Shown piece by piece: positions 6,087 through 47,663 of a DNA stretch of 64,000 bases; position 1 is the first letter of the stretch; each line of letters begins with the position of its first letter. Source of the stretch: Anthoceros angustus. Taxonomy: Eukaryota > Plantae > Anthocerotophyta. A model generated the notes under the pieces. The model did not search any database, was not told the DNA's origin, and worked only from the letters and a program-made list of their open reading frames with translations. The stretch covers positions 868,001 through 932,000 of the forward strand of contig MU008172.1 of the NCBI GenBank assembly GCA_010909165.1. The letters run 5' to 3'. The position numbers and the translations under genes are program-made.

Positions 6087-7328
6087 ATGGCGCATCAAAG
6101 GAGCAGCGGTGCTGCTGGTGGGCTGGACGAGCAGCAGAAGCAAGGCATCCCCGACGACATGAGCCTGGAGCTCTTCCACTTCCCGGACGACCAGAGCGGG
6201 CAAGGGCAAGCCAATCCGACTTCCAACCGCAGGGCGACCAAGCTGGGTCTGGACCTGAGCTTCAAGCACATGGCCCCCGCCCGGGATCTGGGCTTCAAGG
6301 ACCCGGGGGCCGGGGCCGACAAGGGCTCCAAGAAGTACCGGCTGTCAGACAGCGCGATCTTCTCCATCGTGGACTCCGACACGCGGGACATCTACGGGGA
6401 AGAGGCGCTGGAGAAGCTGGCCAAGGCGGAGGACCACGACGCTTCCCTCACCTTCACGCCGGACAACGCGCCCACCCCGTTCGAGATGGAGAGCGTGCCC
6501 CTGTTCAAGCCCCTGCCTCCCAAGCAGGAGCGGGACCGGGGGCTGCCGCTGCTCCCGGAGCAGCCCATGGCCAGCCCCAGGTCGCCCAGTTCCAACGGCC
6601 CGGCTGCGGGGCCTCAATCTCCGACTCACGACTGGGCCCCGAAGTCGCCGCAATGGCGGCCGCAGTCCCCGCAGCCGATGCAGTGGAGGCCAAGTCGCCC
6701 GAGCCGCTGGAGTTCGGGCCCAGATCGCCCAACTACGGCGCGCAGAGGCGGGAGGGATTGGCGGGATGGAGGCGGAACTCAGGAGTCCCAGAGACAGGCG
6801 CAAGCAGGCTCCCGTGGCCAGCAAGCCGGCTACGGCGTCGACGCAGGAGACGAGGACTCGGCGGAAGCTGCAGCAGGCGGTTCCCGACGGAGCTCGTTGG
6901 GGTCGGAGCTCAACATCCGCACCGCCTCCCGACATCGCCATCACAATAAGGGGGGCAAGGCGGCAACGGAGTCGGCAGTGGCTCCCCCACCGTCCCCAAC
7001 GCCGCCAAAAAAAAACGCCAAAATTCCGGGCACGCTCACCCCAAAAAAAACGCCCTGGTTAAGATCCGACAGCGATTCTGCTGCTCCGATTACTTTTAGT
7101 CATTTAGCTCGCTTGCGTCGCTTTGATTGCTTTCGCCGTCACATTATTTTTTCCGCCGTCTTCAACCACCTGCTCCCAGCTTCCGCGTCGCAGAATGTTA
7201 CCATTTTTTCTCTTGTACCTGGTTTTCAGATTTTAATTATATGTCCCTTGGTTCCAAAAATCGATTCTTGTAATTATGTTAAATTTATAAAAGAAATTGT
7301 TGGTGTTATTCTGGGATTGCTGGGTTAA
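6087..7328 (+). CDS. Hypothetical protein, GC-rich single-exon ORF with Pro/Ser/Arg-rich middle; no family recognised
   Basis: Long ORF with strong GC3 bias over 6087-6960. The last ~90 codons are AT-rich and look UTR-like, so the true 3' end is uncertain. Confidence 0.5.
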   Translation: MAHQRSSGAAGGLDEQQKQGIPDDMSLELFHFPDDQSGQGQANPTSNRRATKLGLDLSFKHMAPARDLGFKDPGAGADKGSKKYRLSDSAIFSIVDSDTRDIYGEEALEKLAKAEDHDASLTFTPDNAPTPFEMESVPLFKPLPPKQERDRGLPLLPEQPMASPRSPSSNGPAAGPQSPTHDWAPKSPQWRPQSPQPMQWRPSRPSRWSSGPDRPTTARRGGRDWRDGGGTQESQRQAQAGSRGQQAGYGVDAGDEDSAEAAAGGSRRSSLGSELNIRTASRHRHHNKGGKAATESAVAPPPSPTPPKKNAKIPGTLTPKKTPWLRSDSDSAAPITFSHLARLRRFDCFRRHIIFSAVFNHLLPASASQNVTIFSLVPGFQILIICPLVPKIDSCNYVKFIKEIVGVILGLLG

Positions 7329-12700: not shown

Positions 12701-13300
12701 CGCCGATCCCTGCTCGACTGCTGCCGCCTTCGCTTCTTACCCTTGGAAACTTCCCCCCTCTTAGAACCTTCGAGGCGCACTCCCAAGCTTTGGAATCCTT
12801 GCAGAATCCTCCTTCAATTCCTCCTCTTCTACCTTGGGTTCCACGGCCCCAGCCATGCGGCGGACCACTTCAACTCGTTAAACACCGGAATGCGCAAATA
12901 CATGAATCGAAAAGGCGAAATCAAGGAGGGCCGAGGGAAGAGAGTAAATTCGCCTTCTCCTCCACAGGCTCTTTGAAAATCATCCTCCCCAATCAATTTG
13001 TGTACCCTTGACCACCTCGTGAAGAAAAACCAAGAAGTGATCCGCCATATGATCCGACTTAGGTTACAGAAACACAAAATCCATTTGGCCAATCCCACCA
13101 TTGTGAACACGAGTTGGCGAGTCACCCCGACCATTGTTCACTCTCACTTCCCAGGCTTCATGGCGCCTGCTGCGGCTTTCAAGGTCTTCTTTCGGTCAAT
13201 CACCAAGCTCCCATCCTCGATGCTTCTCGCCCCACACTCGAAGAGGCCAAATCCAGTTCTGCGGCCTTTCCTCGCGTCACCCTCTTGCGACTTGGTCCTT
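9750..13300 (-). pseudogene. Frameshifted ORF inside the 5-kb insertion, resembling the accessory (Transposase_28-like/coiled-coil) ORFs of plant Gypsy elements
   Basis: Protein-like blocks FTRWSRVHKLIGEDDFQRACGGEGEFTLFPRPSLISPFRFMYLRIPVFNELKWSAAWLGPW and coiled-coil ATIEELQDEVSRV...GALEKFKKS...EVQAE. The family assignment is inference. Confidence 0.45.
10380..12690. repeat. Imperfect tandem duplication of about 1.2 kb inside the 5-kb insertion
   Basis: Shared blocks, e.g. CCCAACAACCACATACGTTTAG at ~10627 and ~11756, and GAATTTCTCCAAGGCGCCATCGC at ~10996 and ~12092. Confidence 0.85.
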
Positions 13301-13900: not shown

Positions 13901-16900
13901 TCTGCCCTCGCTCCACGCCCCTCACGGAAAGTCGCGACCTCGTGATCTTGGGTGTGCCCTTCTCCCGATTCGCTCCGTGGTAGTCGCTCCGCCACTAGGG
14001 TTGTAAATTCCCCACAGTGCATGCGTCCGTTTCTCGGCCACCGTGGTGGAACTAGCCACCACCCCACTTGACTACAAGCGTGGCATATTGTGAGCATCCC
14101 TAGCATATATAGACACCTTTTATTCTAAAATTCCCAATACCCAAGGACTCTATTTCTACCCCACCCTCCGGGTCAAACCTAAGGGTCGAAAAATTATTAT
14201 TATCTCCAAGGGCCAAGGACCATTCCGTGATAAAAGACCCGACTCGACGATTCTCAAAGCACTGCTATTCTAACACATCCAAAACAAAAAAAATCGTTCA
14301 CCCTGACACTTGAGAGCGGGGTTAGTGCACATGTGGTCTTCCACAACATTCGTTCCTCATACCTACATACAGTTTACATATCAGCCAGTAGCCAAAAATT
14401 TCAATGACTATAAGTCACATATAAAGGTACAGACATACTGGACATAATTTCCGCCTGAATCTGATCCAAAGGAGAAGTCCTTGATTAGAAGATTGTGCAA
14501 CTCCTCTCCACCACGAACACCAAACCGATTCATACAAAAGTATGCACACTTGCACCATTAAACAACTTGAGCTCAGAAGCAGCATATCTTCAACATAATC
14601 AAAAGTGCAGAGTAGACACAAACCTCTTCTGAGCGCCACGTCCAAATGAAAACTGATGGTCCCTGTGGGCAAGGATCCTCCGCTCGTCATCATCAGAGAT
14701 GATTTTCACCTCCTTCCGGCAAGATACAACTCCAAGGTCCTTGCTGATCTTCATCGAGGCAACCAGGGCAGCCTGTGGCCCATGAAATATACCATGGAAC
14801 ATATTGATAATAGGAACATCACAACCCAAACGGCTATGATCGAGCACACACTTTCTCATGAGAATTCGATTGAACCCTCAAAAGAAGGACATCAACCTGA
14901 AAATAAAAAAAGCTTAGTTGCTAGTATAGCAAGAGACGAAAAACACAATAGGGGAAACACACTTACGTTTCTAGAGAGAACATGGAGTTGTCCTTCAAAT
15001 TGCGCACTTGGTGGAAGAAGGGTATAAGAATCAAGTTAAGATCCCTATGGGGGATATCCTCTACTACTCTATTCCAACCCTTGACACCACTAACTTTCAT
15101 GAAAGCTTTTAGTCTACTACGACACCAATTGTTTTGACGCTTAGACTTATCCTCACCACCACTCAGGGCATCAACAACAGCACCATCAGGAACAGAAGGG
15201 TCAAACCCTTGCTCTCTAAAATTAGCTTCATCCTCAATCTCTTCAACGCCCATTGCAAAATCATCTTCCGGGCACATCTCCGCATCTCAGTCTTTCAAAC
15301 ATATCAAGACACTCTTGATCAGGCACCACTTTAGGATGGAGGACAACCAAAGGCATCGAGAACTCACCTGAGGTTGCGGGGCTGCTGGTTGCTCTGCCTG
15401 GCGCCCGAGACACTTCCAGACATGCCTTGGCAGCATCAAGGACCATGGTGTCATTAGTGATCAAATGATCATTTTCACCAACAAAGACTACTCCCCTCTC
15501 AGAAACAGGAACATAGTTAGTGATCTATGATAACGGGCCTTCCACCAAAGGAACAGGTCGGGTGTCAAGACGTCTTCTCTTTTGAGCAAACTCGGCTGCG
15601 CGTCGAGCAGCCACTTTAGAGGAAAACCGCCTTGGTAACTTTGGACAATTCTTCACTAGTACCAAATATGTTCCCTCACTATGGACAAGAACGCCATCAA
15701 TTTTATCGTCATCATTCAGAGGGTGAGTAGCAATATGTGCAATGGCAGACTTGACACGTTGTCTTGTGAAGGGCTTTGACATGACTTCAGACATAGGTAC
15801 ATGTTTCTTCCCCGGTCTAGCAGGTCCAGTAGGTTTCCTTCTTGGAGCCATCTGAAAAAAAGAATAAAGTAAGACAAGCACTACAGGAACACACAGCAAA
15901 AATGTAAAACAGCACTGTTAGACTTACTTGTGAAAAACAGAATTCGAGATAAAACCGCTGGAAGGTTTAGAAATTGATGATCAAATGATCGAGGCAAAAG
16001 CAAAGGCGATGGTAACAATTGTGACAACAAAAACATATGACGGCGACACCTATGATTTTCTCCTTCGCTTTTTGATGAAAATGCAATAGATAGACATCTT
16101 CCACCTTATTATTCTGAACATGGACGCACTCAAGAAACGCATTCCAATACAATTAACACAAAAAGTGATTAAAACAGTTGACCTCCAAATAGCAAACAAT
16201 AAAACACAAAAGAACATTTGCAAATTCAACGGGCTTCAGGCAACAAACACATATCAAGACTCAATTTTGAAAGGTTTCCCCCAAAGGATTTGAAGCGAAC
16301 CCTCCCAAACGTTGCAATCACCTGCAACAAAAGTAACATTCAATTAATTGAAATATAAATACATGATAAAGCGCCATCTCCTACAAATCACAAGATTGCT
16401 TGCTAACTGCAAATCTAGACATAGACCATGACTTACAGTAGAGGGCACACACAGATACACAATAGAGTAGCTCACAGTTGCCTCAGACACGGCAAAAAAA
16501 AACCTGAGACATACAATTTTTTTACATAAACAGTTAGAGAAATGATGCACACATAGTAAAAAGAAAACATTATAGCAGACAAGTCTAAGAATGACGAGCA
16601 CTAGACAATAATTGTTTCAACGATCTTAAAAAATGCGAGCATTACAAAACGTCACTAAGCGCATAAAAACCAGACCACCAGTCTTCAACGAGTTCAAAAA
16701 AAACATACTGATTGTAAGCAAGCAAAGGACAAATCTTTCAAGATTAAACAGTTTCAGCATTTCAGCATTTGCACGAGAAATCAGTGGGCAAAAACACAGA
16801 AGTGAAACCAGCTAACAAAAGTAACTTAAGGTGGACAGGAGACAGGACAACACTATGAAGAGTACACGAGACAGGACACACTAGACATACCCTATATCAT

Positions 16901-26769: not shown

Positions 26770-29010
26770 TTAGACCTGTACAGTATAAACATCACCACTC
26801 CTCTCATCTCTCAAAGCCTCAAGTTCTTGTAAACGGGAGGAAGCAACACGAAGGTTCTCAAGACCACGGCCTAGGCGAGAGAGTTTTGCAGCAGAAGGAA
26901 GGTCAGCGATTACTCTCTCGATACCATCTCCGCAGAACCAAACACTTGAACCTGCCACAACACTGCCCGCAAAAATCAACCAGGGTCTTGCTCCAGCGCT
27001 TTTGCCTTGTCTGTTCCTCATGACACTATAAAACCCCGTCCGTATAGCAGAGAGAGATGCCCTTTCAGCAGCTGCTACTACAGATCTGGCTGCTGCTTTG
27101 GTTTTCTCAGCGCTGGCAAATGTCTTCCATGCGCTAGATATCTTTGCTGACGTCCCCATCTTCGTGGCAGGAGCAAAAAGTGCCTTGCTAGGAGCTACAA
27201 CTGCCTTAAAAGAAGGTACCACGGCCTTTGCAGCTGGAGCTGCCACATTTGTCAGCGTGGCTGCAGCACTTCGTTTTGCAGAAAGCAAACCTAACTTCAC
27301 AAAAGTCGGGACCTTGAAGGTTAGGATCTTAACTACTGTGGAAACTGGGGCCCAATGAGAGATCGAGGCCAGACCAACAGCAGCTGCTGCTCCAGCACCA
27401 ACAACAACAACAGCTGTAGTCTCTTGCTTATCCAGAAGTTTGATGTCATGCGGACCCTCATTTGTGTGTGTCTCCAAGGGAATGAAGAAGCTGTCGACTG
27501 CAGCAGCAAACTCTGAAGGAACAGGAGTACTCCAGTGTTTCCGTATTTGAGCAACACAGCCAGCATCCATGATGGCCACAACTGACCCAAATTGCCGAGC
27601 TTGTTGTTGTAGCGCTTGGGCCAACAGCACATTGCATTGTTCCAAATAAGGGAGTTCCATAAAGTCCAATCCATTGGGACCTGATTCTGATTTTGGCTGA
27701 AGTTTCGGTGGGGCTCTTGCATCCCTGTTTCGTGCCAGTCGGATTGCTTCGACAGCAACACGAAAAGAACGGGCCTCAGCAAGATCACCTGGACTCACGT
27801 CTTGGCCACTCTCGATAGCTGTCAACATCTTTCGGGTGACCACCAGAGCCTGCCGCATGCCAGGAAGCCCTTTGTACAGCTCATGTAGACCAGTAAGCCA
27901 AGGATCTAAAGGAAGAGCAAAGGCTGGACAGACATAAGCAGCAGTTTCAACATTTTCCACAGCGGGTTCACTGTCCACCAGCATAGACTCAAACTTCACG
28001 TGAGCGATGGAAGGAGATAAGCTGGGAGACACAGCCTTGAAGTCAGCCAGTGTTGACCCTGATAATACCCGCCTAGGGTTACCAACACAAGCTCTTGAAG
28101 ACGTGCCTAATGATACTGAAGTCAAAGAGTTTTGGACGCTTCCTTGCAAACGGTCATCTAGTTCCTGTCTCCTGCGTGCCCGAGGAAGGTCTTCTGCACT
28201 ATGCGACCCTGAGCTAGAAGACGATCCCGTACCATGTGCTGATCCTGGGGCTCCATTGAGAGATTTACTGCTTGTCTCCGATGACAAAGAACAAGTACCC
28301 TGAGAAGTGACAGGTGTCTGCACGATAGTTGACGCAGCGTGGGCTGCACTTTCATGTCCTTGACAGGATGCATCTCCTTTCGAGGAGACCTGGTTTCCCG
28401 CCTGAATGCCATTTTCAATTGATCCACCTGAATCTGGTGAACCTGCAGTTTCAGAAGAAGAGGATGTCTCATCCTCAGCAGAGTCAGAAGCGGCCTGCTC
28501 CCTGAAGGGATCTTCCAAATACAAGAATGTTGACTTGGCCAGCGCCGCAGCATGCTTGGCAGCAATAACATGACCGAAAAAGCCTGTGCCAAAAATTGCT
28601 CTCACTACACAAGTGCCAGCTGCATCCTCAAACCTGGCCTCATCCAGAAAGCGTGCCTTAATGACGTCGGAAATTGACAAGGGATAGGACACCTGTTCAT
28701 AATCGGCTTGCTCTTGCAGCAGATCTAACAAGGAATTGGCTTCTATCTGTGCAACCACAAGCTTAGGGTGCACCGCTGCAATAAGCTTCTCGGCGTCCGA
28801 AGCAGACCTCTCAGATAGCTGCTGCGCGACTAACACATAGACCACAGAGCCAGGCGATTGCGGCACTTGCAAAGCTAAAACGAAGGAAGAAGTGTGAGAA
28901 GGCAGATCCAGATTTTGCACTAGCCTGTCGGAAACCGAGAGATCATCACTAGAACGACGATACCTGCTCCACAGCCTTGTCGCCAGGCCCCAAAGATCCA
29001 AAGACGCCAT
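26770..29010 (-). CDS. Conserved-looking plant protein, 746 aa, single exon; degenerate TraB-like N-terminal segment and hydrophobic C-terminal segments
   Basis: Uninterrupted 2.2-kb ORF. VYVLVAQQLSERSASDAEKLIAAVHPKLVVAQI resembles the TraB N-terminal motif spacing (inference). Confidence 0.8.
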   Translation of the reverse strand: MASLDLWGLATRLWSRYRRSSDDLSVSDRLVQNLDLPSHTSSFVLALQVPQSPGSVVYVLVAQQLSERSASDAEKLIAAVHPKLVVAQIEANSLLDLLQEQADYEQVSYPLSISDVIKARFLDEARFEDAAGTCVVRAIFGTGFFGHVIAAKHAAALAKSTFLYLEDPFREQAASDSAEDETSSSSETAGSPDSGGSIENGIQAGNQVSSKGDASCQGHESAAHAASTIVQTPVTSQGTCSLSSETSSKSLNGAPGSAHGTGSSSSSGSHSAEDLPRARRRQELDDRLQGSVQNSLTSVSLGTSSRACVGNPRRVLSGSTLADFKAVSPSLSPSIAHVKFESMLVDSEPAVENVETAAYVCPAFALPLDPWLTGLHELYKGLPGMRQALVVTRKMLTAIESGQDVSPGDLAEARSFRVAVEAIRLARNRDARAPPKLQPKSESGPNGLDFMELPYLEQCNVLLAQALQQQARQFGSVVAIMDAGCVAQIRKHWSTPVPSEFAAAVDSFFIPLETHTNEGPHDIKLLDKQETTAVVVVGAGAAAAVGLASISHWAPVSTVVKILTFKVPTFVKLGLLSAKRSAAATLTNVAAPAAKAVVPSFKAVVAPSKALFAPATKMGTSAKISSAWKTFASAEKTKAAARSVVAAAERASLSAIRTGFYSVMRNRQGKSAGARPWLIFAGSVVAGSSVWFCGDGIERVIADLPSAAKLSRLGRGLENLRVASSRLQELEALRDERSGDVYTVQV

Positions 29011-32292: not shown

Positions 32293-32520
32293 TGGGACTC
32301 CTCCGGCAGTCCCGAGTATGGGACTGTGGAGTCTCGGTACTGGGACTCTTCCGGCAGTCCCAGGCATGGGACTGGAAGGGCCTGACACTGGGATTCTCCC
32401 AGCAGTCCCAAGTGTGGGACTGTGGAGGCCCGATGCTGGGACTCCCCCAGCAGTCCCGAGTAAAGGACTGTGGAGTCCCAGTGCTGGAACGCTCCCGGCA
32501 GTCCCAAGTATGGGACAACC
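32293..32520. repeat. 48-bp tandem array (two 24-bp hairpin subunits, GGGACT...AGTCCC), about 4.7 copies; inverted partial copy at 31909-31970
   Basis: Units start at 32293, 32341, 32389, 32437 and 32485. Confidence 0.9.
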
Positions 32521-33203
32521 GTTGAAGCTTCAGCCGTCGCCAAGCCCAGCACCTGCTGCAGTTGAGCACGCCCAACACCCATGTTCTGTAGGGAGATCAA
32601 GGGAGTCTCCAACACCTTGCGCATGAACAGGGCTGGGGTGTAAGCCGGTGGCAAATGTGCACGCACACTAGGTTGAGCCCCATGGTCCGGATGTGGAAGT
32701 GCCCTTGCAGTGCTCCATCCAGCTGGTCCTGTCCGTGGACAAGAATGGCCACTCCTGGTGGCAACGAAGTGAAGGATCTGGGCATGGTGGCCCGTGCCTT
32801 GTGCTGCCGAGAAAGGGGATCAACGTCTTCGGCTGCAGCATCCAAGTGCGCCTTCCTCAGGTCACATCCCACCCATGTGGCGGGCAAGGTTGAATCAGGT
32901 TTAGCGGTCACAAGGCAGTTGACAGTGCAGGCTTCCTGTGGCAAGCTTAGGCCGTAATCCTCCTCTTCTTCCTCATAGCGAGGTGCCAATATGGCTGTCC
33001 CAACAGGCTTAGAGGTAGAGGTGCTACCACTGGCAGCTTGGGCTCCTAGCTGAGCTGTGAGTGCTGCCACTGCTGCCTCCAATGCAGCAATCTTGTCCGC
33101 ATTAGGCGCTCCCTTGGCCTTGGCCTTGGCCCCATTCCGCTGCGATCGACCTTTCGACGCACTCGAACTGCTAGCGGCTGTTGTGGGAGTCCCAGCTGAG
33201 TTT
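32510..33203 (-). mobile_element. Distal part of the LTR-retrotransposon gag/gag-pro linker (host of the DNA transposon)
   Basis: NSAGTPTTAASSSSASKGRSQRNGAKAKAKGAPNADKIAALEAAVAALTAQL... continues in frame from the gag on the far side of the insertion. Confidence 0.75.
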
Positions 33204-35424
33204 AACAAGGTCTCCTAAGACCTGGAGACACACCCCTCTTTTTAGAGACAGAGGTCGAAATGACCAAATTTTACATTTGAAATCAAATCAAATCGTGATT
33301 TCGTGGGTTTTTCCAGACACAAGGGTCAAAACACACATCGCAGATAACCTGTGGTTTTCATAACACCATTTCTAGCTTTATCATGCCATTTGATCTTGCA
33401 AATAATGGTCCTCGGTTGGATCAAGTTTGAAAATACCGCGTTTTCACTTTCAAGGACACTTTTCCAAAATCGGTTAGTCTTTCAAAATCGCCAAGTTTGT
33501 GACGCTTTTGAATATATGTACTAAGGGTCAAAGTCCAAACGAGACTAATGTTGTGGATACATTTCATTTCCTTCACATGCCCCTCATGTCCGACATCCCG
33601 AACGGTGTCTTTAAATATGTGGCAACGTGAAAGTTCAAGTTCAATATGTCTCTACATGTCACTATACATAATACAACAAATGCATCAACACATGTCATTT
33701 GGTATCCAAGTGGTGAATTAGATGTATAATTTAGCCAAATGTAAACTAACTAATCGCCTTCTACGCATTTGCCATCCGAAATACACGACACAAGGCGAGC
33801 TTAAAACCCGAACACTCACTAGACCAGATAGGAGCCAGCTGATTTACTTCACTTATAAAAGGGATAGCTTAAACACCGCCAAGTCATGAATGAAAGTCGA
33901 ACGGGACAAGGCGAAGAAAGCAAAACCGGATGTCCGGTGAGCACCACACACAATGCCCATATTGACCATGCTTTAAACGATGTACCCCGTCAAAGACCAA
34001 AGTGTGTGTAAAGGATTCAACAAAAGCACTATTCCGATTGAGTGAGCATCCGCATAGAAACCAAAACCAATAGTGCTCATTCCTAGGCTAGTCTCAAGTC
34101 GTACACTCTATGCTGAATGCACCACGAACAAGAAACCAACACTAGCGGCGGTCAAACCAGGATGTGCCATTTAGCACCGTGCATCAACACCATCAAATAT
34201 CCGCAAGAGAACACAACCACAAGCAAAAAGAAGGATGAAACATCGCCATACAAGAATCTGGCCGAAACCATACTTGCCATCCTCACTGGGCTCGCCTTCA
34301 CGGTCGCTCCCTCCCTCCACTGCCGCCAAGGCCTTCAGTTTCTGCTGCGACCATCACCGTGGCTAGCTCCCTCCGCCTCCTTCTCGCGCCCATACGCGCC
34401 TTCGCATCCAACTCCTCCAGACAACTCCCGCATCTCCGGCTTCACCGCCAAATATGGTCCGAATCAGAGCTCCCTTTCACCGTCTTCACCTCCTCCCGCA
34501 AGTGAGAGGTCACGGGTTATATCCCTTGGCTTTCCACCCTCATCCCTCCGGGAAGGGTCCACACCCTAGCGGCTCCCTTAAGGCCACCCCGACACCCACC
34601 TCCCTTCCGAACCAACAGGCTTGGGGTGAGGAAAACGGTGCCACTGAAGCCCGGATCGCCCAACAGCGACATTGCCTCGCGTGTTGGACCCCGCGAGGCC
34701 CCACCGAGGAGGTCTTCCTCCTAGCCCTCTTCGCTGCGATGTCAGATGTCACCGTGAGGTAGCCGCCGCCTCGCTTCTCATCGCAATCGTGGAGAACTAG
34801 CCGCACAAAGGCGGGTGCCAGTTGTTAGGAAGCACTGCTGCACCAGGCGAGCACCACCAGGCGAGCACCACCAGGCGAGCGGCGAGCACCACCAGGCGAA
34901 GCCTTTTGCGCTCCAATCTCCGATGCAAATGGCGTCCTCCTCAACCAACACGCACCACTCGCTGCCACCCAAGGCCACCACGCCCCGCTCACCCCCAGTG
35001 GCACTCAGTAGCCGCCAGGATCGCCAACCACGGCAAGCGCAGGCTCTTGGAGCGTGATGGAAAATAAAAAGAAGAGTGAGGGGCAAGAGGGGGGGAGTAC
35101 CCGGCTTCGGAGGAGGGTTTACGCTCCGGTCTCTCCCCCATTCCTTCCCATCCTACATACAATTGTCAGAACCGACAGCCCTGCACGCAGCCCGAAAAAA
35201 ACGGTACACCAGGCCATACACCAGACAAGTGTGAAACCTTACAAAAACATGATACGTGTTACAACTGTGCCCCGGATGTCCGGTGGAGAAGCCATAGAGA
35301 CTCAACCCTGTTTGCCAACACTCCAAAAGAGGAGCACACATCCTAATAAAAACAAACCACCTTCACATAACTAGGAAATCACTGTCTATGACCTCAGCTC
35401 TCTCTCCCGACCAACATCAAAATT

Positions 35425-38400
35425 CTAAATTCTAGGTGGGTTAGGATCTGGCTCCTCGCCGGAGTCCACACCTGCCATCAAGTCCACCAAATAATCAACA
35501 GATGCATCAGAGGATTCAATGTTGTCCAGGTCTTCCGAATCAATCCGCTCATCACCGGTTTCATCACCATCAACAGGAGGAAGCATGTACCTTCCTCACT
35601 AGGCTCAGTAACTCAAAGACCTTCCTCTTCAACATATCCATGGTGTTTTGCTTAAAGTCCTGCTCCTCGTCAACACAAAATCGTAACCCATGATCGTGGT
35701 CTCCAAAAGCTTGATGGCTTGGACATGTTTCTTCAAAGGATTCCGCGCCTACCTTTCCGTGACTGGGGGTACTCGACCCATTCCTCCGAGTACCTACCCT
35801 CAAGTGCATTAGGGTTTTCTGCGCCACCGGTGGATTTGTGCGGGTCACAGCCTTCATGGTCCACCTCCACAACCTTGCCTAGCCGAAGGCCGGCCCTCGG
35901 GGTCATCTGCGGCTGGACCGCAATCATCATGCCCGCTTGGATCTCGAATAGATCCTCCGCTTGTTGTTCCAACTGCTCCGCCTAGCGGCGATCCTGCGGC
36001 ACCGATAAATCTCTGGCCCTGTCCAAATATTCGCCTTGCTAGTCTGCATCCACCACTACTTCGAAACATCACGGAGGTTCTTGAGCATGCGCTTCCGGTT
36101 ATACCATGTCCATGCTGCTTTCCAATGGACAAGATGACTGACGCTACTAAACCCGCTATTGCCAATCGCTCCTCCCAAAACCATCCCACCAAGATAGCAA
36201 CGCATTGAAGATTTCGTGGAAGTTCTTAACCGCCTATTGTCTTCCACTCCAGCCATAGCCTCGGGGACATACATGTGGATGCTCCTTTGCTCCTTGCCCT
36301 TCGCCCTCACATGCAGTGGTACCAGTGGAGCCGCAACAATCTCCCTCTCTGGCACTCCATCCCGTAACAGCTGAACACCACCATCTGGGGTCCATTGTGC
36401 AGCCGTGGAAAATTGCTTGCACCTCAGCACCGTCACAAACTCATGACTAGGCAACTCCTCCCGAGTGACCTTAAATTGATGTTGAAAACTGTGGTTGTGT
36501 AGACTGTACGTTGCAGGAGAACCTCCGGGCGGCCATAAATATTGCTTAAAATCGGCACCTCCTTCATGAGATGGACCTTGAGGGAGTATAAGCCCTCCAA
36601 GCAAGCAATCAACTCCCAATGTGTATGCCTCTTTCAAGTTCAAGACAATGTAAAACGGAAAACATTTGATCAATCGATCATGGGTATGGCCAACAATGAG
36701 AAACCCCACTTTAACCTTCTTAAAAATACCAATGGACACCAACATCGCGCAATACGCCAACACCTCCTGGTTCTTGTTACCGTATTGTCCATCTGCAAAG
36801 AGTTTCGTGCAATTGCCCTCCCACAAATTAATCACATGCTGGATTAGCAATTGTGCCGTTAGGATCATTCCAATATTGGGGTAGAGGTACACATAAGTGC
36901 GCATGAATTTGTTGAACACCAAAACCCCAACCACATGGATGTAGATTAGGGCAAGACATCTTTGGGCACTCTACGGAAATGAGGCAACTCAGTTTTTTTC
37001 TGGTCCATACCATCTATCGCAATCCCTATGTACTTGGTCGGTTGAGCCATACACTTCCCGCGATGCTTCGCCATTTTCCTCCGCTCCATCTGTTGTTGAT
37101 CCCGGTGATAATTGAGGAGTTCTCTGTTTCTATCTGCACATACAAGGGCCACCATCAGTACACGCACGCGCAACAACGCAAGTGTTCCTGCACTGTGGCC
37201 CAAAGTCATCTACGTGCCAAACCCTAAGTCTCCTAAGGCCATAGGGTTTGCGCCGCACACTTCTACCAGTACACGGCCATCCAATCACCGGACATCCCGG
37301 TGCTTACAGTGATAAGGTAGATGGATTCTCGGGTTGTACCTTGCTCTTTGTCGTTCCCGGCGTTTTTTATTTTAGCTTTTAACTTCTCACAGATAGCACA
37401 GACGGAGAAGCGGTTGGATCTTGGTATTTTAACAGACCGGCGTCGATCCACAACTTGCGTAAATAGTGTAACATACATGTGCGGTAATCGCTCTTGCCTG
37501 TTGTCTAGCATACTCAATATAAATCTCCTCCTTCGTGAATGTATCAGGCAGGTTAAAGACTTCCCTATTGGGTAGCCTTTCCACATTTCCTTTGAAAAAC
37601 AAATCCATCCACATTACAGCCTGTAGACCATATGAAGTAGGTATTTTTCCTGGCCTGGGCTCAGCGGCAAACCTCGTCCCCTTCTGTACTCGGGTCTGAG
37701 CATTCCGATACCGGAGTGCCCCAATGCAAAACACACGGCAAAATGCCCTCACACACACCGAAACCTTTCCGTGTGGTAGCTTGTTCAACCATCCGGTCAC
37801 GACACGGCCATATCTTCGATCACATCAACTGGGTCCCGCAAATGCTGCTCCTCCCCTTACTCATCGAAAAAGGCACGCGAGCTTTTAGCCGCCATGTCCC
37901 AACTTTCCTATGCACTTTCTCCCACAGACCGCCTCCTCAGTGCACATAGCTTGACTACAAGTCGCCAAAACATTGTCCACCTTATTCCTTGCAGATGGTT
38001 CTTGGTGGAACACATAACCCCATCCATAGACGCAACTCCAACCCCTCGACTTGGGATTAGCAGGAGCGGATTTCGCACACCGGGAGGCCTCGCTCGCCTC
38101 CTCTCCAAACAAAGGTGCAATCGGATCTCGTACCACATTTGGTCTCCCCGCCTTCCACTCCAACCTCCTTCACCCACTCGCAACTCCAAACCAAAATCAA
38201 CAATGCCATGGACCTTCTCACCACAACCGACTCAAAGAACACTCGCTTCCGATTCCGTTATTCTTTGCCAGGCTGCGGTGAAACACAACGTTGAAAATAC
38301 TCCTGCGACCCACACTGGATCCGCTTGTAGGCGCCACCTTGTCTCCTCTCGCGCGAGACACACCCGCTTGGCCCGGGGATTTGGATCTGGGCAAAACATC

Positions 38401-38944
38401 CTCGCCAACTTCTTCGCACCCGGTGACTTGAACAAGCCAGGGTAAATGGTACCTGGCGCAGGCTGCCGAGGCGGGCCAAGATTGCGGATATCGGGGGAGG
38501 GATATCGAGGGCGCCGCCTCTCTTGTTCACGGCGGCGGGCACGAGCTACCGCTCGATCCACATGGTCTGCAATTTCTTGCTGATCGCGCCGCGCTCGTTC
38601 CGGTGTCCACCCAGGATCGAACAAAAACAAGTCTCCATCGCTTGCGACCTCGTCCGCTATACCACCCTGCAGGGCGGTGTCATCCAAGTCGATGTGTGCC
38701 ATGTTCTTCGACTACAGAGACATTCACCGGACGTCCGCGTTCCCTTGGTTGTCCATCATCACCGCCGCCAAGTCCACGATGTCGGACTCGGACACATGCC
38801 CGAGATCTTCATCGCGTACCAGTCCGCTGCTCACCAAATCAAAGAACTCTTCCTCTGCTACCGAGGTCACCGCCATTGTGCGCTACCAAAGAGTAGAAGA
38901 AAGTGCTGCTCACAATGTGCTCGGGTGAAGACGTAGCTAGACAT
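35425..38944 (-). CDS. DDD/E transposase, Sola-like, frameshifted
   Basis: VSVCVRAFCRVFCIG; RFSVCAICEKLK; IAIDGMDQKKTELPHF (37000-37017); frameshift-corrected LQMDNT..NKNQEVLAYCAMLVSIGIFKKVKVGFLIVGHTHD.IDQMFS (36664-36800); C-terminal LGKVVEVD Tudor-like segment. Confidence 0.8.
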
Positions 38945-39166
38945 GTTCAAACTTGTATCCAGCCTCGTGGCCCGCTCCGTAATCAATTATGACTTGACGC
39001 GGATGTCCGAATTGCGGCTCTGATCCCGGCGGCCGTGCCTTAATGATTGCAAGGATCGAGAGCGAGGTTATGCAAAGGCGAAACATGTTTAGCCGGATGG
39101 CAAAACATGGAATATTCTCATAAATATGCTTTACTACTTGTTTTGCGATGTGCCTTTGGAGCGCGA

Positions 39167-42100
39167 ATGAAGGCTAAACTTGGCGACGATCGGGCATTGG
39201 ATGATTTCGCGAGTGGTGGAATTACAGAATTGTCCCGACGATGCCGAGTCTCTTGCACATCGTGACCCCACATAGTCATACTACCTTCCTCCAGCGCTGG
39301 AAGACCGATTTTGGCGCCAACCGAGCCGAGATGGTGGATATATTGAGCGAGGGACAAAGCGATGATTTGTCTCTTATCCTCGATTCGACCGCGAGGAATC
39401 GGAGTGTCTTTCGACCATGTGGTTTCATTGAAGGTCAACACCGCTCCAACCTCACAGGCCATCCGTGTTTCACGAAGAACATACCAGGTCCGCTGATGTG
39501 CGCCGACTTTTCGACAATCCTTAATGCTTGCGATCAATTATGTGCTTCCCTCATGTTATACTTGCTAATATGTCCAATGATCTCCTTGCTACAATGGGTT
39601 GTTTGGCAGATGGGCCCTCAAACAGAAGCGGAGCAAAGGCGCCAAACCCGATGGAGCGCTAGCGGGAGAAAACGGACCAGCGGCAGCCTTTGATTCAGGC
39701 CCCATGGAGACCGTGACATCCGGATCCGGCATCAAGATGCATACCCGACACCGTGAACCCGCGCCCACGACAACGCCCCCAACTAGAGCAACTTTCCAAA
39801 GTCCTTACAAGCAGCGACATCGACATGATCGATGCTTCAGGACAACTCTCCTTCGATATATCCGATGTGAGTTGGATCAGGCAACAACGCCCTGCAGACG
39901 GTTGGTATTTCGCATCTTGGGTGCCGGACAAGCCGATTCAAAGCCCTCATGTCTTGGTGCCGCTTTTGTTCACGCAATTGTGGAGAAGGATGACCAAGGG
40001 TATGTCATTTTTGTGTACATCAAGACAAACTACCAAACCCGACCCCAATGTCGTCCGAGTCTACTCACCGTGATCAAGAATTTTGACATCGTGGCTTGCC
40101 CGGAAGCGTCGTGAAGAATCCGCAGGCTTGCAAAAATGATGGGCATGAGTTTTCCACAAGGTAATGCACCAAGTATGTTTAGAAGGCATTAGGCCGCCGG
40201 TACTGTCGGATTGGTGTAAACCCACCCGTCGCCGCAGGGTGGTAGTGGATCATCGGCCGGTGAAAGGCGATAGACGACATCGACTTGACGGAATTCAAAG
40301 CATCCAAGCGGTGCATCCGCAAGCACACCGCAGCATATCCGCCAGAAGCAACAACAAAAGCATCGTGATCAGCCGGAAGCATCTTCAAGATGGCGGAATC
40401 TCACAAGGGCATCTGCAGGAAAGCAACCAGCCTCACCGGATGCAACCGAGCAAAGGCATCCGAGGGAAGCATCCCGCAATGCCATGGTGGGGAAACATCC
40501 TAGCACCGCATCCGCTCGAGGTCCGCAATACAACCAATTGCAAATGATCCAGAAAGATCGGCCCGGCTTCCGCTGGCCCCCCGAGCTGGTGTGCACCGAC
40601 GTCCGGGTTTTGACTGCCACTGTGACTTTGTGATTCTTCAAGGCCAAGGAAGCTAGCTTGACCGGGTATGACGAGGATATGGAGAACAGGTGAGGACACA
40701 GAGGACTATGGATGGCGCCCCGCCGAGGAGGACGAAGATGATCAAGACGGTGAAGATGGCTCACCTGGAAGGAGACCTGCGAGGCTAATGACGATGAGCA
40801 TGACCTCGAGGTCCTATCCCCACTGCATGATTGCTCACAGCGGTCTTCGTGGCTTGTCTGGATCGCAGGAGGGTGCAGCAGTCGCCGCCGTGGGGAATGC
40901 ATCAAAGGGGCGAGAGGGAGGAGCCGGAGATGGCAAACCAATCGATGAGAAGGCGCAGTTCGCGTAGTGGCAAAGCCAAGAAGGCAAGGGCAAACGGAGA
41001 AGCTGCAATTGCAATTGGGAGCGAAGAGTCGGAGGAGGAGGATGAACCGCTTCCGTGTTTGTGGAGATTGCCAAGGATAGCGGTGGCTACAGACGATGAG
41101 CTTGCGCCATCAAAGCGTATGCAAGCCGGACGTGGAAAGGGACGGTATCGCAATGAAGAGAGTGTGGAGTCTACTGCGCCAATCAAGTGTTGCACTTCGA
41201 GGAAGGCAGCCTGTGGTGAGGAAGTTGGATCTCGCATGGGTAGAGGCTTTGATGCAAAAGATGAAGCATTGTCCCTGGGTGTGTTGCCCATGGTTGTGGT
41301 TGTGGATCCGCACAATGTGCTACACAAGAGAATTTCGGCGTTCAAGGTGGGGAAGGTGGGGATTACATTTTTTCGCCTTAGGGGGAAACCATTCCTTCCA
41401 GGCAAGGTCCCGGCTGTCTCATCTGTACCCACTGGTGGAAGAGTACAAGTGGATGGATGCATATGTGCTCGCTGGACTCACTGAGGACGAGATGAGGATC
41501 GTAGCCACGGACCACAACACCATAGCAGATGCCAGGAAGACATTTACCTTCATGGACCGTGTGCGTTACATCAGAAGTGAGCTGCTGTCTCGGAGGTCGA
41601 AGGGTTTGAAGTGTGACGTGGATTGGAAGTTGGATGTGTATGCACGGTTAGGCAAGATCCCCAAGTGGGATGCAGCCAAGCATGGCCCCAAGGTGCAGTA
41701 TCACCGCCTGGTGGACAATAGGACACTGGATTATTGTGTGGCTAAAGTTGACGAAGAAGTGTGGAGGTATGTGGACGAGATTTTCGAGAAGTGGGAATGT
41801 AAGCAACTACCTGAGCAGATAGACGCTGCCCGAGCACTAGCAGCGAAACAGGCGAAGGCTACAAGGAAGTCGAGGAAATCTGCAGCGAGAGATCTTGTGG
41901 TCATCGATGTGAAGGAATCGGATGTTCCTGTGAGAGTGTGGAAGTGTTTTCAGGGTATCGAGCACTCAGCAGCAGGCAACAACAATTTGAAGACGGCATG
42001 CATGAAGGTTTTGGCTGGAGAAATGAGCTTGAAGCAAATGCAAGAGTGGGTGGAGAAGGCCAAAAAATTGAACCTCATTCACATCACCTCATAAGAACCC

Positions 42101-43849
42101 GAATTGTGAGACTTTCCAGGTTAGGGATCGATACCCTCAATACAAAGACGGTGGAGTAGATCGAACTTTCAACCGGCATTCAAAAATATGGTAAGTGACA
42201 TGGACAAGCACCGCCACCGGCATGTGATATGTACTAAATGTAAATATGCTTGTTTGCGCATGGTTTGTTTCCACGGCTTGGAACTTTGCCATTGCGTGCG
42301 CGGGCCAATGCCTCTCGAGTGGAGTGCACTCGACAATTTCAAGGAACATGTTTTGAAAGCCAAAGCTTGGAGGATAATGGCGATGAGCAACAACAATTTG
42401 AAGATGGCATGCATGAAGGTTTTGGCTGGAGAAATGAGCTTGAAGCAAATGCAAGAGTGGGTGGAGAAGGCCAAAAATTGAACCTCATTCACATCACCCT
42501 TGCGAAGAACACATTGTGAGACTTTCCAGTTAGGGATCGATACCCTCAATACACGGTGGAGTAGATCGAACTTTCAACGGCATTCAAAAATATGGTAAGT
42601 GACATGGACAAGCACCGCCACCATGTGATATGTACTAAGCGAAATATGCTTGTTTGCGCATGGTTTGTTTCCGTCGGCGATTGGAACTTTGCCATTGTGC
42701 GCGGGCCAATGCATCTCGAGTGGAGTGCACTCCACAATTTCAAGGAACATGTTTTGAAAGCCAAAGCTTGGAGGATAATGGCGGATGGCGACAATTGTTG
42801 GAGGCCTCCGATCAAAAAGTTGGACTTTCGTGGATGACGGAGAACCCGCAGGTAGGTATAGTATGTGGCAACATCGTGCAGATGGCCCAGTTTCTAGAAC
42901 CCCGTCCGTTTGCCATGATTCTGTTGGACTTGCCCCGGGGGTTGAATTTGGATGCGAACTCTAGGGAGTATGACACGCGGTTCACTCGTCAGGAATTTGA
43001 GAAGATCATAATGACATTCCAGGGCATCACAACGTCTGAGGTTTTTCGAGTCGTGGTATTCCATTCGCCTGATGATATGTCCATGGTTCGTGAAGTTTTG
43101 CTTGCAGCATGTAAAGGTGGTGTCACGTCCTGCTTCTGGCACAAAACTAATGTGACGGCACCCTCCACAGAGCAGTCAGATGATGCGGTGATTACATCAC
43201 CACGGCGCAGCTCCTTAAAGCGATTGTCCGCCTCAAAGATTTCTCCTCGGCATCACCGATGTTATGAATGACGCAGAGGGTTGACAACTTGCTTTCCGAG
43301 AAGGTCAGGAACATAAGCTATGTTACAACACGGCAGATGATAGGGTGGTTTCCTACCGAAGCCCATTAGATTGTTGAGGAAGTTGATTGAGCTATACAAT
43401 GGAAGGCGAGTGGATCCTAGATGGTTGTGCAGTGCCCGTTCGGTATGGTAGCACCCTCAAGTCCGCCGCAATGGATGATAGACGAGATCCCGAGCGGTGC
43501 AATTCATGGGTTTGCGGCTCAATACGATGGACAACCGCCAAGCGAGGAGGAGGAGGTGGGAGACGTTGAGCGCAGACCCAAGACGTGCGAAAGAGCCCAT
43601 GGTGAACACCGCAGTGGCCGAGGTCGCTTTTGTGGGTCCGGGCGCGTGCATAAGAAGACGCGATGCACAATTGAGGCGTGTCGATCCACTTTCGATCGGT
43701 GTTGTAGGACATCAGCCGACAAGTGCGAGGAGGTTAGTGAGAAAGACGCAGCACATTGGCGAGATGGCGGAAGAGGCTTTTGCCGCAACATTGGGGCCGA
43801 TGGATCGAGGTCCATCCTTGAGACGCCGACCGAGAAGTATGATGGCTGA
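39167..43849 (+). CDS. Large ParB/Srx-like + beta-class amino (N6A/N4C) DNA methyltransferase with a C-terminal Cys-rich (PHD-like) segment; frameshifted, with an internal 411-bp duplication
   Basis: ParB-like: VRKLDLAWVEALMQKM...PMVVVVDP...FFALGGNHSFQARSRL...AGLTEDEMRIVATDHN (GGNHS 41381-41395). Motif IV-like MILLDLPRG (42927-42941), FWHKTN, KPIRLLRKLIELY (43359-43397), then motif I-like GEWILDGCA...GSTLKSAA (43405-43460). This is the IV-TRD-I order of beta-class methyltransferases. Confidence 0.75.
41976..42785. repeat. About 411-bp imperfect tandem duplication inside the methyltransferase gene
   Basis: GCAACAACAATTTGAAGA...GAAGGCCAAAAA starts at 41976 and 42387; the copies differ mostly by small deletions. 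Confidence 0.9.
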
Positions 43850-44789
43850 TTGACTCTCGGACAACTTCCGGACAACTTCCAGGCGGACAAAACAAACTTG
43901 TAGCATCGAACTGGATTGGGAGAGAGTTGTGAGGGCTAGGAAATCTGCAGACGACCGGTTGGTTAACGTTGCTTTTGTGTTGGACTCCAAGCTTTGAGAC
44001 AACTTGCGATGCGCATGACCATGTCTTGCACAACACCGGACAGCCGGTGATAAAGGCTTGCTCGGTGTCCATTGTGTCCAGCTTGATCCAAGCTCTTGCG
44101 TAACCATTTTTGTTCACGATGGCTCGAGCAAGGGAGAAACATGGTCGGCGCTGAACAACATTGCATCAATGAGCATCCTCATGCATATCCTTCAATCGAA
44201 CACCGGAAAAGGGGATTGAGAACTACGCCACGCCGCCCCCAATCGCCATTTCCTGTGCACGCACGCACGGCCGGCGCATTGGTGTGCATGAGTTGGCCCC
44301 TGCGAGGCGGGCGTAGGGAAGGCGAGTGGCACCCGATTCGAGCTTCGTCCATGTGAAGTGTCATGGCCGAGACCTTATCGAATTGCAAATCGATATCGAC
44401 CATGGCGGGCGCTTATACCGGACCAACGAATAGCGAAATGCATTGCTATAAGAAATTGTCAACACGGCCACACGGGTCTGTTGTGGTGGAAAGCCTTCGC
44501 TGGTGATTAGTCGCGACATGATGAATGCATTCATCATATGCATGTAAAGGACGATGTCACGATGCGTGTACGACCGCATTGAACCCGCAATTGTAAATAG
44601 ATTGCCGCACGGTGTGTCCGAAAGGCCAGCGGTATGAAGTTGGAGATTTCATCCAATTTCGGTAGTGCAACCTCGGGCTGCACCGGCTAAAATGGATTCA
44701 TACCATTCGCATTCACGGATGTCCGGGTCATACAAGTACAAGACAATGTGCGCTCTTTTTTCTGTCGGCCTACGGACCCTTAAACTCAT
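43850..44789 (-). CDS. Third transposon ORF (about 310 aa reconstructed): candidate 2OG-Fe(II) dioxygenase (AlkB-like); second copy at about 45320-46260
   Basis: ATG 44789: MSLRVRRPTEKRAHIVLYLYDPDIRECEWYESILAGAGPRLHYRGNWMKSLNF...YSLVRYKRPPWSI.DLQFDKVSAMTLHMDE (HxD at 44347-44355)...DAMLFSADHVSPLPEHVNKNGYARAWIKL (H at 44141-44143, R at 44094-44096). Built from two frameshifted copies. Confidence 0.45.
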
Positions 44790-46745
44790 TTTTGTGGACC
44801 TTTTTAATATCCATTTTTGTGCGGCCTATAAATTGCATGTATCATCTTAAAGAATTGGCGAAATTCATGAGAACTTGGAGGAGTGTAGACCATGTGAAGG
44901 TCTTATTACCTTAAAACCATTGAAATGCATGATTTCATTCTTAAAGTCACATCTTTATCATGCAATTTTTTTAAAAAATTCTGCAAATTATGAAATTCAA
45001 GCTTTTTTGTTTCCAGGTCCCAAATTTCACCCCCTCAAAACCAGAGACGAGGAGCCGTCTCCCACTCTTAGGAGACCTTGTTGTTTGTGGATCCACCTTG
45101 TTGGTATCTGCGCTCCGGATGCTTCTAGAAACAGACTGTAACCAAATGGCCAGTCTTGTTACAGTGAGAGCAATGCAAGCCTTCAACATGAAGCTTGCAC
45201 GCTGGAGCCAAATAATCCGGACTACCACGGCGATTGCACAACGTTGTTAAGATAAACTGCATCTTGATTTGGGCCGGCACGGATGGGCTTGAAACCCCGA
45301 TCCCATGCCTCTCCGGACAACTTCCAGGCGGACAAAACAAACTTGTAGCATCGAATCTGGGATTGGGAGAGAGTTGTTAGGGCTAGGAAATCTGCAGACG
45401 ACCAGTTGGGTTAACGTTGCTTTTTGTGTTGGACTCCAAACAGTTTGAGACAACTTGCGATGCGATACGGCCAGTCTTGCACAACACCGGACAGCCGGTG
45501 ATAAAGGTGATTGTCCATATGATTGATCCAAGCTCGGCTTGCGTAACCATTTTTGTTCACGTGCTCGGGCAAGGGAGAAACATGGTCGGCGCTGAACAAC
45601 ATTGCATCAATGAGCATCCTCATGCATATCCTTCAATCGAACACCTGTGAAAAGGGGATTAGCGAACTACGTCACGCCGCCCCCTCGCCATTTCCTGTGC
45701 ACGCACGTCACGGGCCGACGCATTGGTGTGCATGAGTTGGCCCCCTTGCGAGACTGAGGCGTAGGGAAGGCCGGTAGTGGCACCCGATTCTGAGCTTCAT
45801 CCATGTGCGTGAAGTGTCATGGCCGAGACCTTATCGGAATTGCAAATCGCATATCGACCATGGCGGGCGCTTATACCAGACCAACGAATAGCGAAATGCA
45901 TTGCTATAAGAAATTCGGTCTGAACACGGCCACACGGGGTCTGTTGTGGTGGAAAGCCTTCGCCGCGTGGGTGATTAGTCGCGGACATGATGAATGCATT
46001 CATCATATGCATGTAAAGGGACGATGTCACGATGCGTGGTATGACCGCATTGAACCCGCAATTGTAAATAGATTGCCGCACGGTGTGTGTCCGAAAGGCC
46101 AGCCGGTATGAAGTTCAGAGATTTCATCCAATTTCCACGGTAGTGCAACCTCGGGCCTGCACCGGCTAAAATGGATTCATACCATTCGCATTCACGGATG
46201 TCGGGTCATACAAGTCTGATACAATGTCGCTCTTTTTCTGGTGATCTGGACCCTTAAACTCATTTGTGGACCTTTTTAATATCCATTTTTGTCGGCCTAT
46301 AAATTGCATGTATCATCTTAAAGAATTGGCGAAATTCATGAGAACTTGGAGGAGTGTAGACCATGTGAAGGTCTTATTACCTTAAAACCATTGAAATGCA
46401 TGATTTCATTCTTAAAGTCACATCTTTATCATGCAATTTTTTTAAAAAATTCTGCAAATTATGAAATTCAAGCTTTTTGTTTCAGTCCCAAATTTCACCC
46501 CTCAAAACCGAGGCGAGGCCGTCTCCCACTCTTAGGAGACCTTGTTTGTGGATCCACCTTGTTGGTATCTGCGCTCCGGATGCTTCTAGAAAGCAGATCA
46601 TGGCGGTCTTGTTACGGTGAGAGCAATGCAAGCCTTCAACATGAAGCTTGCAGCCAAATAATCCGGACTACCGCGATTGCACAACGTTGTTAAGATAAAG
46701 CGATTTTGGCACCGGATGGGCTTGGAAACCCCTGATCCCATGCCT
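43867..46745. repeat. About 1.44-kb tandem duplication spanning the transposon right end and part of gag
   Basis: Copy 1 is 43867-45311 and copy 2 is 45312-46745, with TCC microhomology at the junction; the copies differ by many 1-4 nt indels. Confidence 0.9.
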
Positions 46746-47663
46746 CCAGATGTGTTCCCCTTGCTACAAAATATACTTTGATAGTGCGTAAAGGCCTTGG
46801 AAAGCCGAGAAGCATACGCTGAAAATGCAATTTCCTTGTGCTCCAATTCCTCATGGGCCTGTTCCAGGGTGTAGTTGTCCCCATATTTGTCCACCAGCGA
46901 GGTGACATGTTGAAAGTGGAACAATGGATCCCCCCCCAATGCTGTAAGAAACTTCTCGGCTGCCTCTTGGTCAGTCAACATTCTTGTGCCTTCTCGCCTC
47001 TTCTGAAGTCTGCGAAAGGTCATCTGGACAGTCTCATCCTTCTTGTGGACGAGACTGGGCCAGCTCAGCTATCTTCTTGGGAGTCTTGAGCGGAAATGTC
47101 TTCTCAAGGATAGCCATGAACTGCACCACGGGGTTGGAATACTTGGGAGTTTGGATGAACTCTGAGACCCCCACTGTGGCTGCCACTCTCTTAGCAGTAG
47201 TCATACTCACCACAGAGGGTGGCAGGACAGTGGCTGCGACTGTCCTAGTAGCGATTTTCGCTTGGTGGGCACTCACAGCTGTTGCCAACTTGCCTTTATA
47301 AGCAAGCTATAGCGCTCCTTGAAACTGCGGATTCACTGTGGAGATGGTAGAGGACAAATCAGTTTGATATGCCTCATACAAATCTAGCGCCTCGTCCGCC
47401 GAGTAGCTTGAAAGCTGTTCAAACGTGTACTGGTGATTGTAAGCGACACCATGTTTGAACCTGACCCGGCTGATAATGGCATTGAGGGACAGCCAAAAAT
47501 CTCGCAGAGATTGCGTGCCAGGTCTTTTTAAAAATCTGTCCTGCCTGTATGAGGGTACTCCACCTTCCATGGTATTCGAATCCTCCGAAAGATCAGTTGA
47601 TTTTGATCTTATCCCTGTAGGGCTTGAATTGGGACAAGTTTGTCTCGATTGATCTCCCGGCAA
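45083..47663 (-). mobile_element. LTR-retrotransposon gag (proximal part) with a CCHC zinc knuckle
   Basis: ORFs 47307-47663, 47034-47288 and 46598-47023 are collinear; CSHCNKTGHLVTVC at 45131-45172 (CX2CX4HX4C). Confidence 0.75.

Follow-up and report, generated by a model that had tools for sequence, protein, structure and literature searches.

The window analyzed here is a 64,000-nucleotide (nt) stretch of Anthoceros angustus (contig MU008172.1, positions 868,001 to 932,000 of the forward strand), and its segment 33204-45082 is very probably an old, inactivated 11.9-kb cut-and-paste transposon of the Sola1 superfamily, derived from a two-gene ancestor with methyltransferase-like cargo, devoid of a third gene, and duplicated at its right end after insertion. 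An original prediction made from the sequence alone had described this segment as a transposon carrying a transposase gene, a gene for a ParB-like and DNA amino-methyltransferase protein, and a candidate dioxygenase gene, that is, a mobile module for writing and possibly erasing a DNA mark. The features are listed below with their positions in the window and, where they have one, their strand. L011, to which some of them were aligned, is a related locus on another contig; aa denotes amino acids and ORF an open reading frame.

33200..33203: left copy of the target-site duplication (TSD), GTTT, read directly
33204..33229, plus strand: left terminal inverted repeat (TIR), first 17 nt exact, containing a small hairpin
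35455..37824, minus strand: Sola1-type (DUF7869) transposase pseudogene, assigned by Pfam and alignment with relatives
35455-35987, minus strand: conserved C-terminal block of the transposase pseudogene
36059-36970, minus strand: core block of the transposase pseudogene
36949-37209, minus strand: DGMDQ block of the transposase pseudogene
37266-37824, minus strand: N-terminal block of the transposase pseudogene
41138..42085, plus strand: N-terminal half of the accessory gene, possibly a ParB-like domain and then a helical region, sharing 50% identity with the 488-aa ORF of L011
41976..42783, plus strand: tandem duplication of 401 base pairs (bp) in the accessory gene, 2.0 copies, 92% matches
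42849..43610, plus strand: decayed beta-class N6_N4 methyltransferase-like domain, assigned by homology to its family
43737..44825, minus strand: claimed dioxygenase ORF, non-coding right subterminal DNA as far as tests show, no gene detected
45057..45082, minus strand: right TIR, aligned to the L011 terminus at 7245-7283, terminal GAGACCTTGTT identical
45083..45086: right copy of the TSD, GTTT, read directly
45312..46746, plus strand: tandem second copy of 43867-45311, made up of the right end and 229 nt of flank and including another terminal repeat at 46521-46546

The predicted boundaries of the element are real. In a pattern search of the window, AACAAGGTCTCCTAAGA was matched exactly over 17 nt at 33204-33220 (plus strand) and at 45066-45082 (minus strand), where 0.02 matches per window are expected by chance, and the two arms of the TIR reach 26 nt at 88%. 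GTTT immediately flanks both ends as a 4-bp TSD. The termini read AACAAGGTCTC...GAGACCTTGTT, beginning with AAC. Each terminal repeat also contains an internal hairpin (GTCTCC, 8 nt, GGAGAC), and the L011 terminus retains its GAGACC...GTCTCC core. Repeat arrays resembling parS and shared subterminal motifs were searched for, and none was found.

The transposase gene predicted on the minus strand is present as a pseudogene. An ORF at 36056-36934 matches the Pfam model DUF7869 (E=2.3e-14), and relatives of the encoded protein (P0029-P0032, 30-41% identity in the alignment) have the block LYLQxDNTSxxNKN...KVKVGFLxVGHTHDxIDQxF in common. The transposase of Sola1-1_Ec32, an element of the brown alga Ectocarpus (Genome Biol 2025, PMC12477816), contains MDGANQ, VDNTVAENKN and MVGHTHIQIDQIF in the same order, according to the supplement of that paper, and 28/52 positions, counted by eye, are identical between it and P0029. 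Because of the DUF7869 match, the motif block common with Sola1-1_Ec32, the 4-bp TSD and the AAC termini (AACCG in Sola1-1_Ec32), the window element is assigned to the Sola1 superfamily, in agreement with the Sola-type assignment made earlier. Residues 361-450 of the L011 transposase are matched by the C-terminal block of the pseudogene at 35745-35987 (minus strand; EI..(x)MVAVQ...LGKV..VDH...LEGRYS.E). Pfam does not match this block, which could serve as a module for binding chromatin or DNA.

The accessory gene lies on the plus strand at about 41138-43610, divergent from the transposase. Its methyltransferase identity, as originally proposed, holds through homology to proteins that pass the Pfam model PF01555 (N6_N4_Mtase); the window's own ORFs, those of a pseudogene, reached no methyltransferase or ParB model in Pfam. 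A protein search with 42780-43268 returned 20 representatives among 1.84 billion proteins, the closest of which (P0003 and P0004) are 50-52% identical to that interval. PF01555 scores for members of the family were 50.1 bits (P0003), 47.3 (P0008), 39.7 (L011) and 30.0 (P0004), relative to a curated cutoff of 26.7 bits. Membership in N6_N4_Mtase is therefore assigned to the family by homology, and not to the decayed window copy alone. Compared with sequences in the PDB, the family profile matched M1.HpyAVI/DpnA, TTHA0409, M.RsrI, M.MboIIA, M.BceJIV, CcrM and rotifer N4CMT (5e-12 to 6e-8). The structure search proposed with the original prediction was performed on a relative, P0004, whose AlphaFold model has a core with a predicted local distance difference test (pLDDT) score of mostly 80-97 and best Foldseek matches to the solved structures of CcrM, MboIIA, BceJIV and RsrI (E 4e-13 to 2e-9). 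In the family alignment, motif IV precedes motif I, as is typical of the beta class. A second methyltransferase-like stretch at 54.6 kb, hinted at by tblastx and not repeated by tblastn, was discarded as noise.

Motif IV of the family departs from the canonical (D/S)PP(Y/F/W). It reads DLPRG in the window (about 42936-42950) and in 8 representatives of the same clade, some of them only 36% identical to one another, and D-[IL]-P-[YH]-G in 12 other representatives, including the Chara braunii protein GBG86584.1 (DLPYG); P0021 has DIPST. All of these representatives keep the motifs YQKP and DxCSGSG. Persistence of DLPRG across such divergent copies may reflect selection on the motif, and with arginine standing where the base-stacking aromatic would be, ordinary methyl transfer by this plant clade is doubtful and an altered activity is hinted at.

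Two independent related loci, the 16-kb L005 and the 9.1-kb (9089-nt) L011, both on contigs from public run SRR33208241, carry the same gene pair at 40-60% protein identity to the window. In L005, the N-terminal region of the transposase and the accessory gene are divergent and 3.5 kb apart, as in the window. L011 consists of a 619-aa DUF7869 ORF (E=1.7e-49), a 488-aa ORF for the N-terminal domain, methyltransferase ORFs and a right terminus, in that order; positions 7245-7283 of this terminus align to window 45044-45082, and the final 11 nt agree throughout. It is a compact, nearly intact relative in which the methyltransferase is found in two overlapping ORFs. When the terminal pattern was searched in seven loci other than L011 at up to 3 mismatches, no match was obtained; the L011 terminus was matched by blastn. 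The transposase protein P0029 was also found in run SRR33208242 (locus L013), and judging from these sequences the Sola1 family may be recently or still active in the organism of SRR33208241/SRR33208242. In Ectocarpus, Sola1-1_Ec32 has been described as a Sola1 transposase with a ParB-like/N4C-N6A methyltransferase on the opposite strand, the latter a fusion of 1104 aa, within an element of 21.5 kb with 282-bp imperfect TIRs, a TSD of 4 and AACCG...CGGTT termini (PMC12477816). Proteins similar to it have been reported from green and red algal transposons.

Several other explanations of the segment can be weighed against these data. By chance nesting or Pack-type capture, the methyltransferase would be a host or foreign gene caught in a single element and not a part of the family. 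Beside the distant homologues L002, L006, L007, L009 and L010, in Chara and in metagenome contigs, no Sola1-like transposase was detected in the sequence examined, as this explanation would allow; yet it is extremely unlikely given the divergent pair common to L005 and L011, the terminal sequence common to L011 and the window, and the pairing published for Ectocarpus Sola1-1. Because L005, L011 and Sola1-1_Ec32 carry the same pairing, the methyltransferase-like gene is regarded, from sequence comparison, as cargo of the family and not as chance nesting. Of the distant homologues, L007 (Chara braunii BFEA01000570.1, 49.5 kb examined) encodes P0011/GBG86584.1, a protein of 1825 aa with two N-terminal, possibly ParB-like domains and a UPF0020-like methyltransferase stretch in addition to the N6_N4 domain.

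An intact writer/eraser module, in which the methyltransferase installs N6-methyladenine (6mA) or N4-methylcytosine (4mC) and an AlkB-type 2OG-Fe(II) dioxygenase removes the mark, is scarcely credible. The methyltransferase-like fold of the family is real, the concept exists, since red-algal Plavaka transposons have been reported with an N6A methylase and a ParB-2OG-oxygenase, and an HMD tripeptide is present in a 77-aa piece at 44182-44412. The convergent ORF said to contain HxD...H...R at 43737-44825 (minus strand), however, is not a single ORF: it falls into four pieces without stops (58, 95, 77 and 143 aa), of which the 58- and 95-aa pieces are separated by a stop within a common frame, whereas the 77-aa piece is read in a different frame. 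None of the stop-free pieces matched Pfam at E up to 1. In a language-model search, the two longest pieces had feature recognition of 1232 and 995, values within the range reported for shuffled sequence (real families usually exceed 2300), and no 2OG family was found among their neighbours. Compared with its own tandem duplicate, the segment accounts for 36 of the 42 indel events in the repeat, most of them 1-2 nt long, and the two copies open different frames. In L011, there is no room for a third gene because only 531 nt remain between the methyltransferase stop (6752) and the terminus (7283), and the segment is absent; no match to it was found in the downstream sequence examined in L005 or L003, or in comparison with L004. 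A continuous ORF, a double-stranded beta-helix match, HxD...H...R in register and conservation in related elements, all expected of an AlkB/2OG enzyme, were not found. The proposed dioxygenase is not a gene. Absence of profile assignments, named in advance as grounds for abandoning the original prediction, thus applies to its dioxygenase half, while the methyltransferase half was assigned via relatives. A JmjC-like gene between transposase and accessory gene was also considered and dropped: ten ORFs of 37911-40964 and the intergenic ORFs of L005 gave nothing in Pfam, and no conserved coding was seen in this interval between L005 and the window.

The remaining genes of the window copy are broken. 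By comparison with the 619-aa L011 ORF, the transposase has frameshifts near 36953, 35987 and 35703 and four stops in its C-terminal block; four residues are deleted ahead of the second Asp, LIK replaces the IDQ of the relatives, and with the loss of a catalytic Asp the DDD triad is no longer intact. In the accessory gene, the N-terminal domain is frameshifted near 41281 and 41360, stops occur after 42091, and the 401-bp duplication, missed in the first reading, interrupts what is a continuous ORF in the relative P0028. The frame is lost beyond about 43190, three stops lie in 43222-43431, and motif I remains as DGCAVPVRYGST at about 43417-43452, where relatives have DGCSGSGS or DGCAGSGST, so that its GxG is gone. 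Because the relatives L001 and L005 are broken at other sites, these lesions are taken as independent decay and not as introns. Both genes are pseudogenes and the element is a dead copy; with its genes broken, it cannot install any mark as had been supposed, and the writer/eraser reading is refuted for this copy.

That the copy is instead nearly intact, with frameshifts introduced by errors in a noisy long-read assembly, is very unlikely. This explanation draws on the perfect TSD and outer 17 nt of the TIRs, and on a duplication at the right end of the element, also missed in the first reading. There, a 1.44-kb stretch at 43867-45311, taking in the final 1.2 kb of the element together with 229 nt of flank, is repeated in tandem, which accounts for a third AACAAGGTCTCCTAAGA match at 46530-46546 (minus strand). 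The duplicates are 93.6% identical in substitutions and differ by 89 substitutions (6.4%) and by 42 indel events that mostly span 1-2 nt; such a share of indels could come from age or from assembly noise. Stops lie in frame in both the methyltransferase and the C-terminal block of the transposase, and these, together with the replacement of IDQ, the residues missing ahead of the second Asp, the altered motif I, the substitution divergence of the 1.44-kb duplicates and a 401-bp duplication that, at 92% matches, is not recent, speak against assembly error. The right-end duplication postdates insertion and is old. In the right subterminal region, ATGATGAATGCATTCATCAT at 44518-44537 and 45987-46006 forms a 20-nt palindrome without mismatches; it is kept in both right-end duplicates, one per copy and not in an array.

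Decay of a two-gene Sola1 element is the preferred reading, and some points weigh against parts of it. Placement in Sola1 was made with a motif block compared by eye and a Pfam DUF model, not with a Repbase comparison, and the accessory protein was set beside that of Ectocarpus by description. Indels are unusually numerous relative to substitutions in the right-end duplicates, and some of the frameshifts could be assembly errors. As to the ParB-like part of the gene, ParB_N was not matched in Pfam by window ORFs, family members or L011, the only match being DUF6551 on P0002 (E=0.0045); the AlphaFold N-terminal domain has a pLDDT of 27-59, which is low confidence; and hhalign of the family profile with eight phage ParB_N domains gave only E=0.099, though co-linear. 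In this alignment, the GGNHS motif, found at about 41380 in the window, falls over GHxR, and AGLT..E...HN over the next strand and helix. Other tests gave no decisive ParB match (a PDB profile search, Pfam and NCBIfam on all family members, and hhalign with one phage ParB_N). In a language-model feature search, which is weak evidence, neighbours of the best match include ParB_N, DndB and phage ParB-methylase families. The likeness of the N-terminal domain to ParB can be called plausible, not established, on these tests. In P0028 a single open frame runs unbroken from the N-terminal half on into motif IV, so that the two halves form a single intronless fusion protein, as has been reported for the 1104-aa protein of Ectocarpus. 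Features of the N-terminal domain in P0002 (residues 190-470) score 0.94-0.95 with fungal DUF3723 clusters. DUF3723 is a cargo family of the giant fungal Starship transposons. No paper connecting it with ParB was found in a literature search.

From the family as a whole, the ancestral element can be envisaged as two divergent intronless genes, one for a DDD transposase with the conserved C-terminal block and the other for a protein of about 1000 aa, with a possibly ParB-like N-terminal domain and a beta-class amino-methyltransferase-like domain. The transposase would excise the element and insert it at 4-bp targets, as expected from what is known of the superfamily. By analogy with phage ParB-methylase fusions and with the proposal made for Ectocarpus, the most likely role of the N-terminal domain in live relatives is to bring the methyltransferase-like domain onto the DNA of the element itself, and the latter domain would then mark or bind DNA in a manner dependent on S-adenosylmethionine (AdoMet). 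It could further be hypothesized, with rather low expectation, that seed-free land plants host a Sola1 lineage whose fused DLPRG protein, retaining the AdoMet motifs DGCSGSG and YQKP, is a working enzyme or an AdoMet-dependent DNA binder with new chemistry or a new target, acting on transposon DNA.

Among known systems, Sola1-1_Ec32 resembles the window element in its DN..ENKN / VGHTH..IDQ.F block, 4-bp TSD and AAC-initial termini, and differs in its size, TIR length and stramenopile host, the window element being 11.9 kb long, having TIRs of 26 nt and residing in the genome of a land plant. The earlier statement that this gene set was not known on a Sola-type element is outdated now that the pairing has been published for Ectocarpus. 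What is new is the land-plant host and the conserved DLPRG instead of D-[IL]-P-[YH]-G; no paper on the gene pair in a land plant was found in a literature search, an absence that is weak evidence. The nearest published case to a writer with an oxygenase comes from the red alga Bostrychia, whose giant Plavaka (EnSpm-like) transposons with PAG2 and PAG3 have been described as carrying an N6A-methylase/SET gene and a ParB/2OG-oxygenase gene (bioRxiv 10.1101/2025.02.11.637652). They likewise carry a DNA amino-methylase-like gene as cargo, and a ParB-domain gene as well. Unlike the window family, which fuses its N-terminal domain to the methylase-like domain and has no oxygenase, they belong to another transposase superfamily and fuse ParB to the oxygenase and the methylase to SET.

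With CcrM, M.MboIIA, M.RsrI, M1.HpyAVI and M.PvuII, the family has in common motif IV before motif I, YQKP, DxxxGSG and the fold, whereas identity is only 13-19% and the (D/S)PP(Y/F) of the bacterial and phage enzymes is replaced by D-[IL]-P-[YH]-G or DLPRG. Phage proteins such as that at L008 991-2256 have ParB_N followed by N6_N4_Mtase, the same order, while the plant N-terminal domain stays below Pfam ParB_N. Marchantia MpDN4MT1a/b (bioRxiv 10.1101/2021.02.12.428880) and bdelloid rotifer N4CMT (PDB 8s9m-8s9o) are also eukaryotic amino-methyltransferases of the prokaryotic beta-class type, and among land plants MpDN4MT1 is the one example whose activity has been shown, as 4mC in sperm. Compared by description, both are host genes with canonical TSPPY and have not been described as transposon cargo.

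Transposons with their own DNA-modifying enzymes bear on how host epigenetic control is evaded or exploited. To this subject, the window copy adds a land-plant host and not a new principle, because the pairing had already been described for a brown alga. If active, the DLPRG protein would represent an amino-methyltransferase-like enzyme that lacks the usual aromatic, a question that the dead window copy cannot answer experimentally.

Some minor observations concern the surroundings of these elements. Excision restoring a host gag frame was considered and not demonstrated: a 201-aa flank ORF gains only 11-12 codons beyond the junction and has no Pfam match. Farther from the element, a 746-aa ORF at 26770-29010 (minus strand) is without a Pfam match at E up to 0.001. 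Downstream of the L005 accessory gene, the same contig has a Peptidase_C48 (ULP-like) ORF at 11918-12892 (minus strand) and a RecQ-type helicase fragment at 15394-15961 (plus strand). In the left flank of the window element, 32293-32516 is a 48-bp tandem repeat (4.7 copies, 77% matches) inside low-complexity ORFs adjoining the insertion site.

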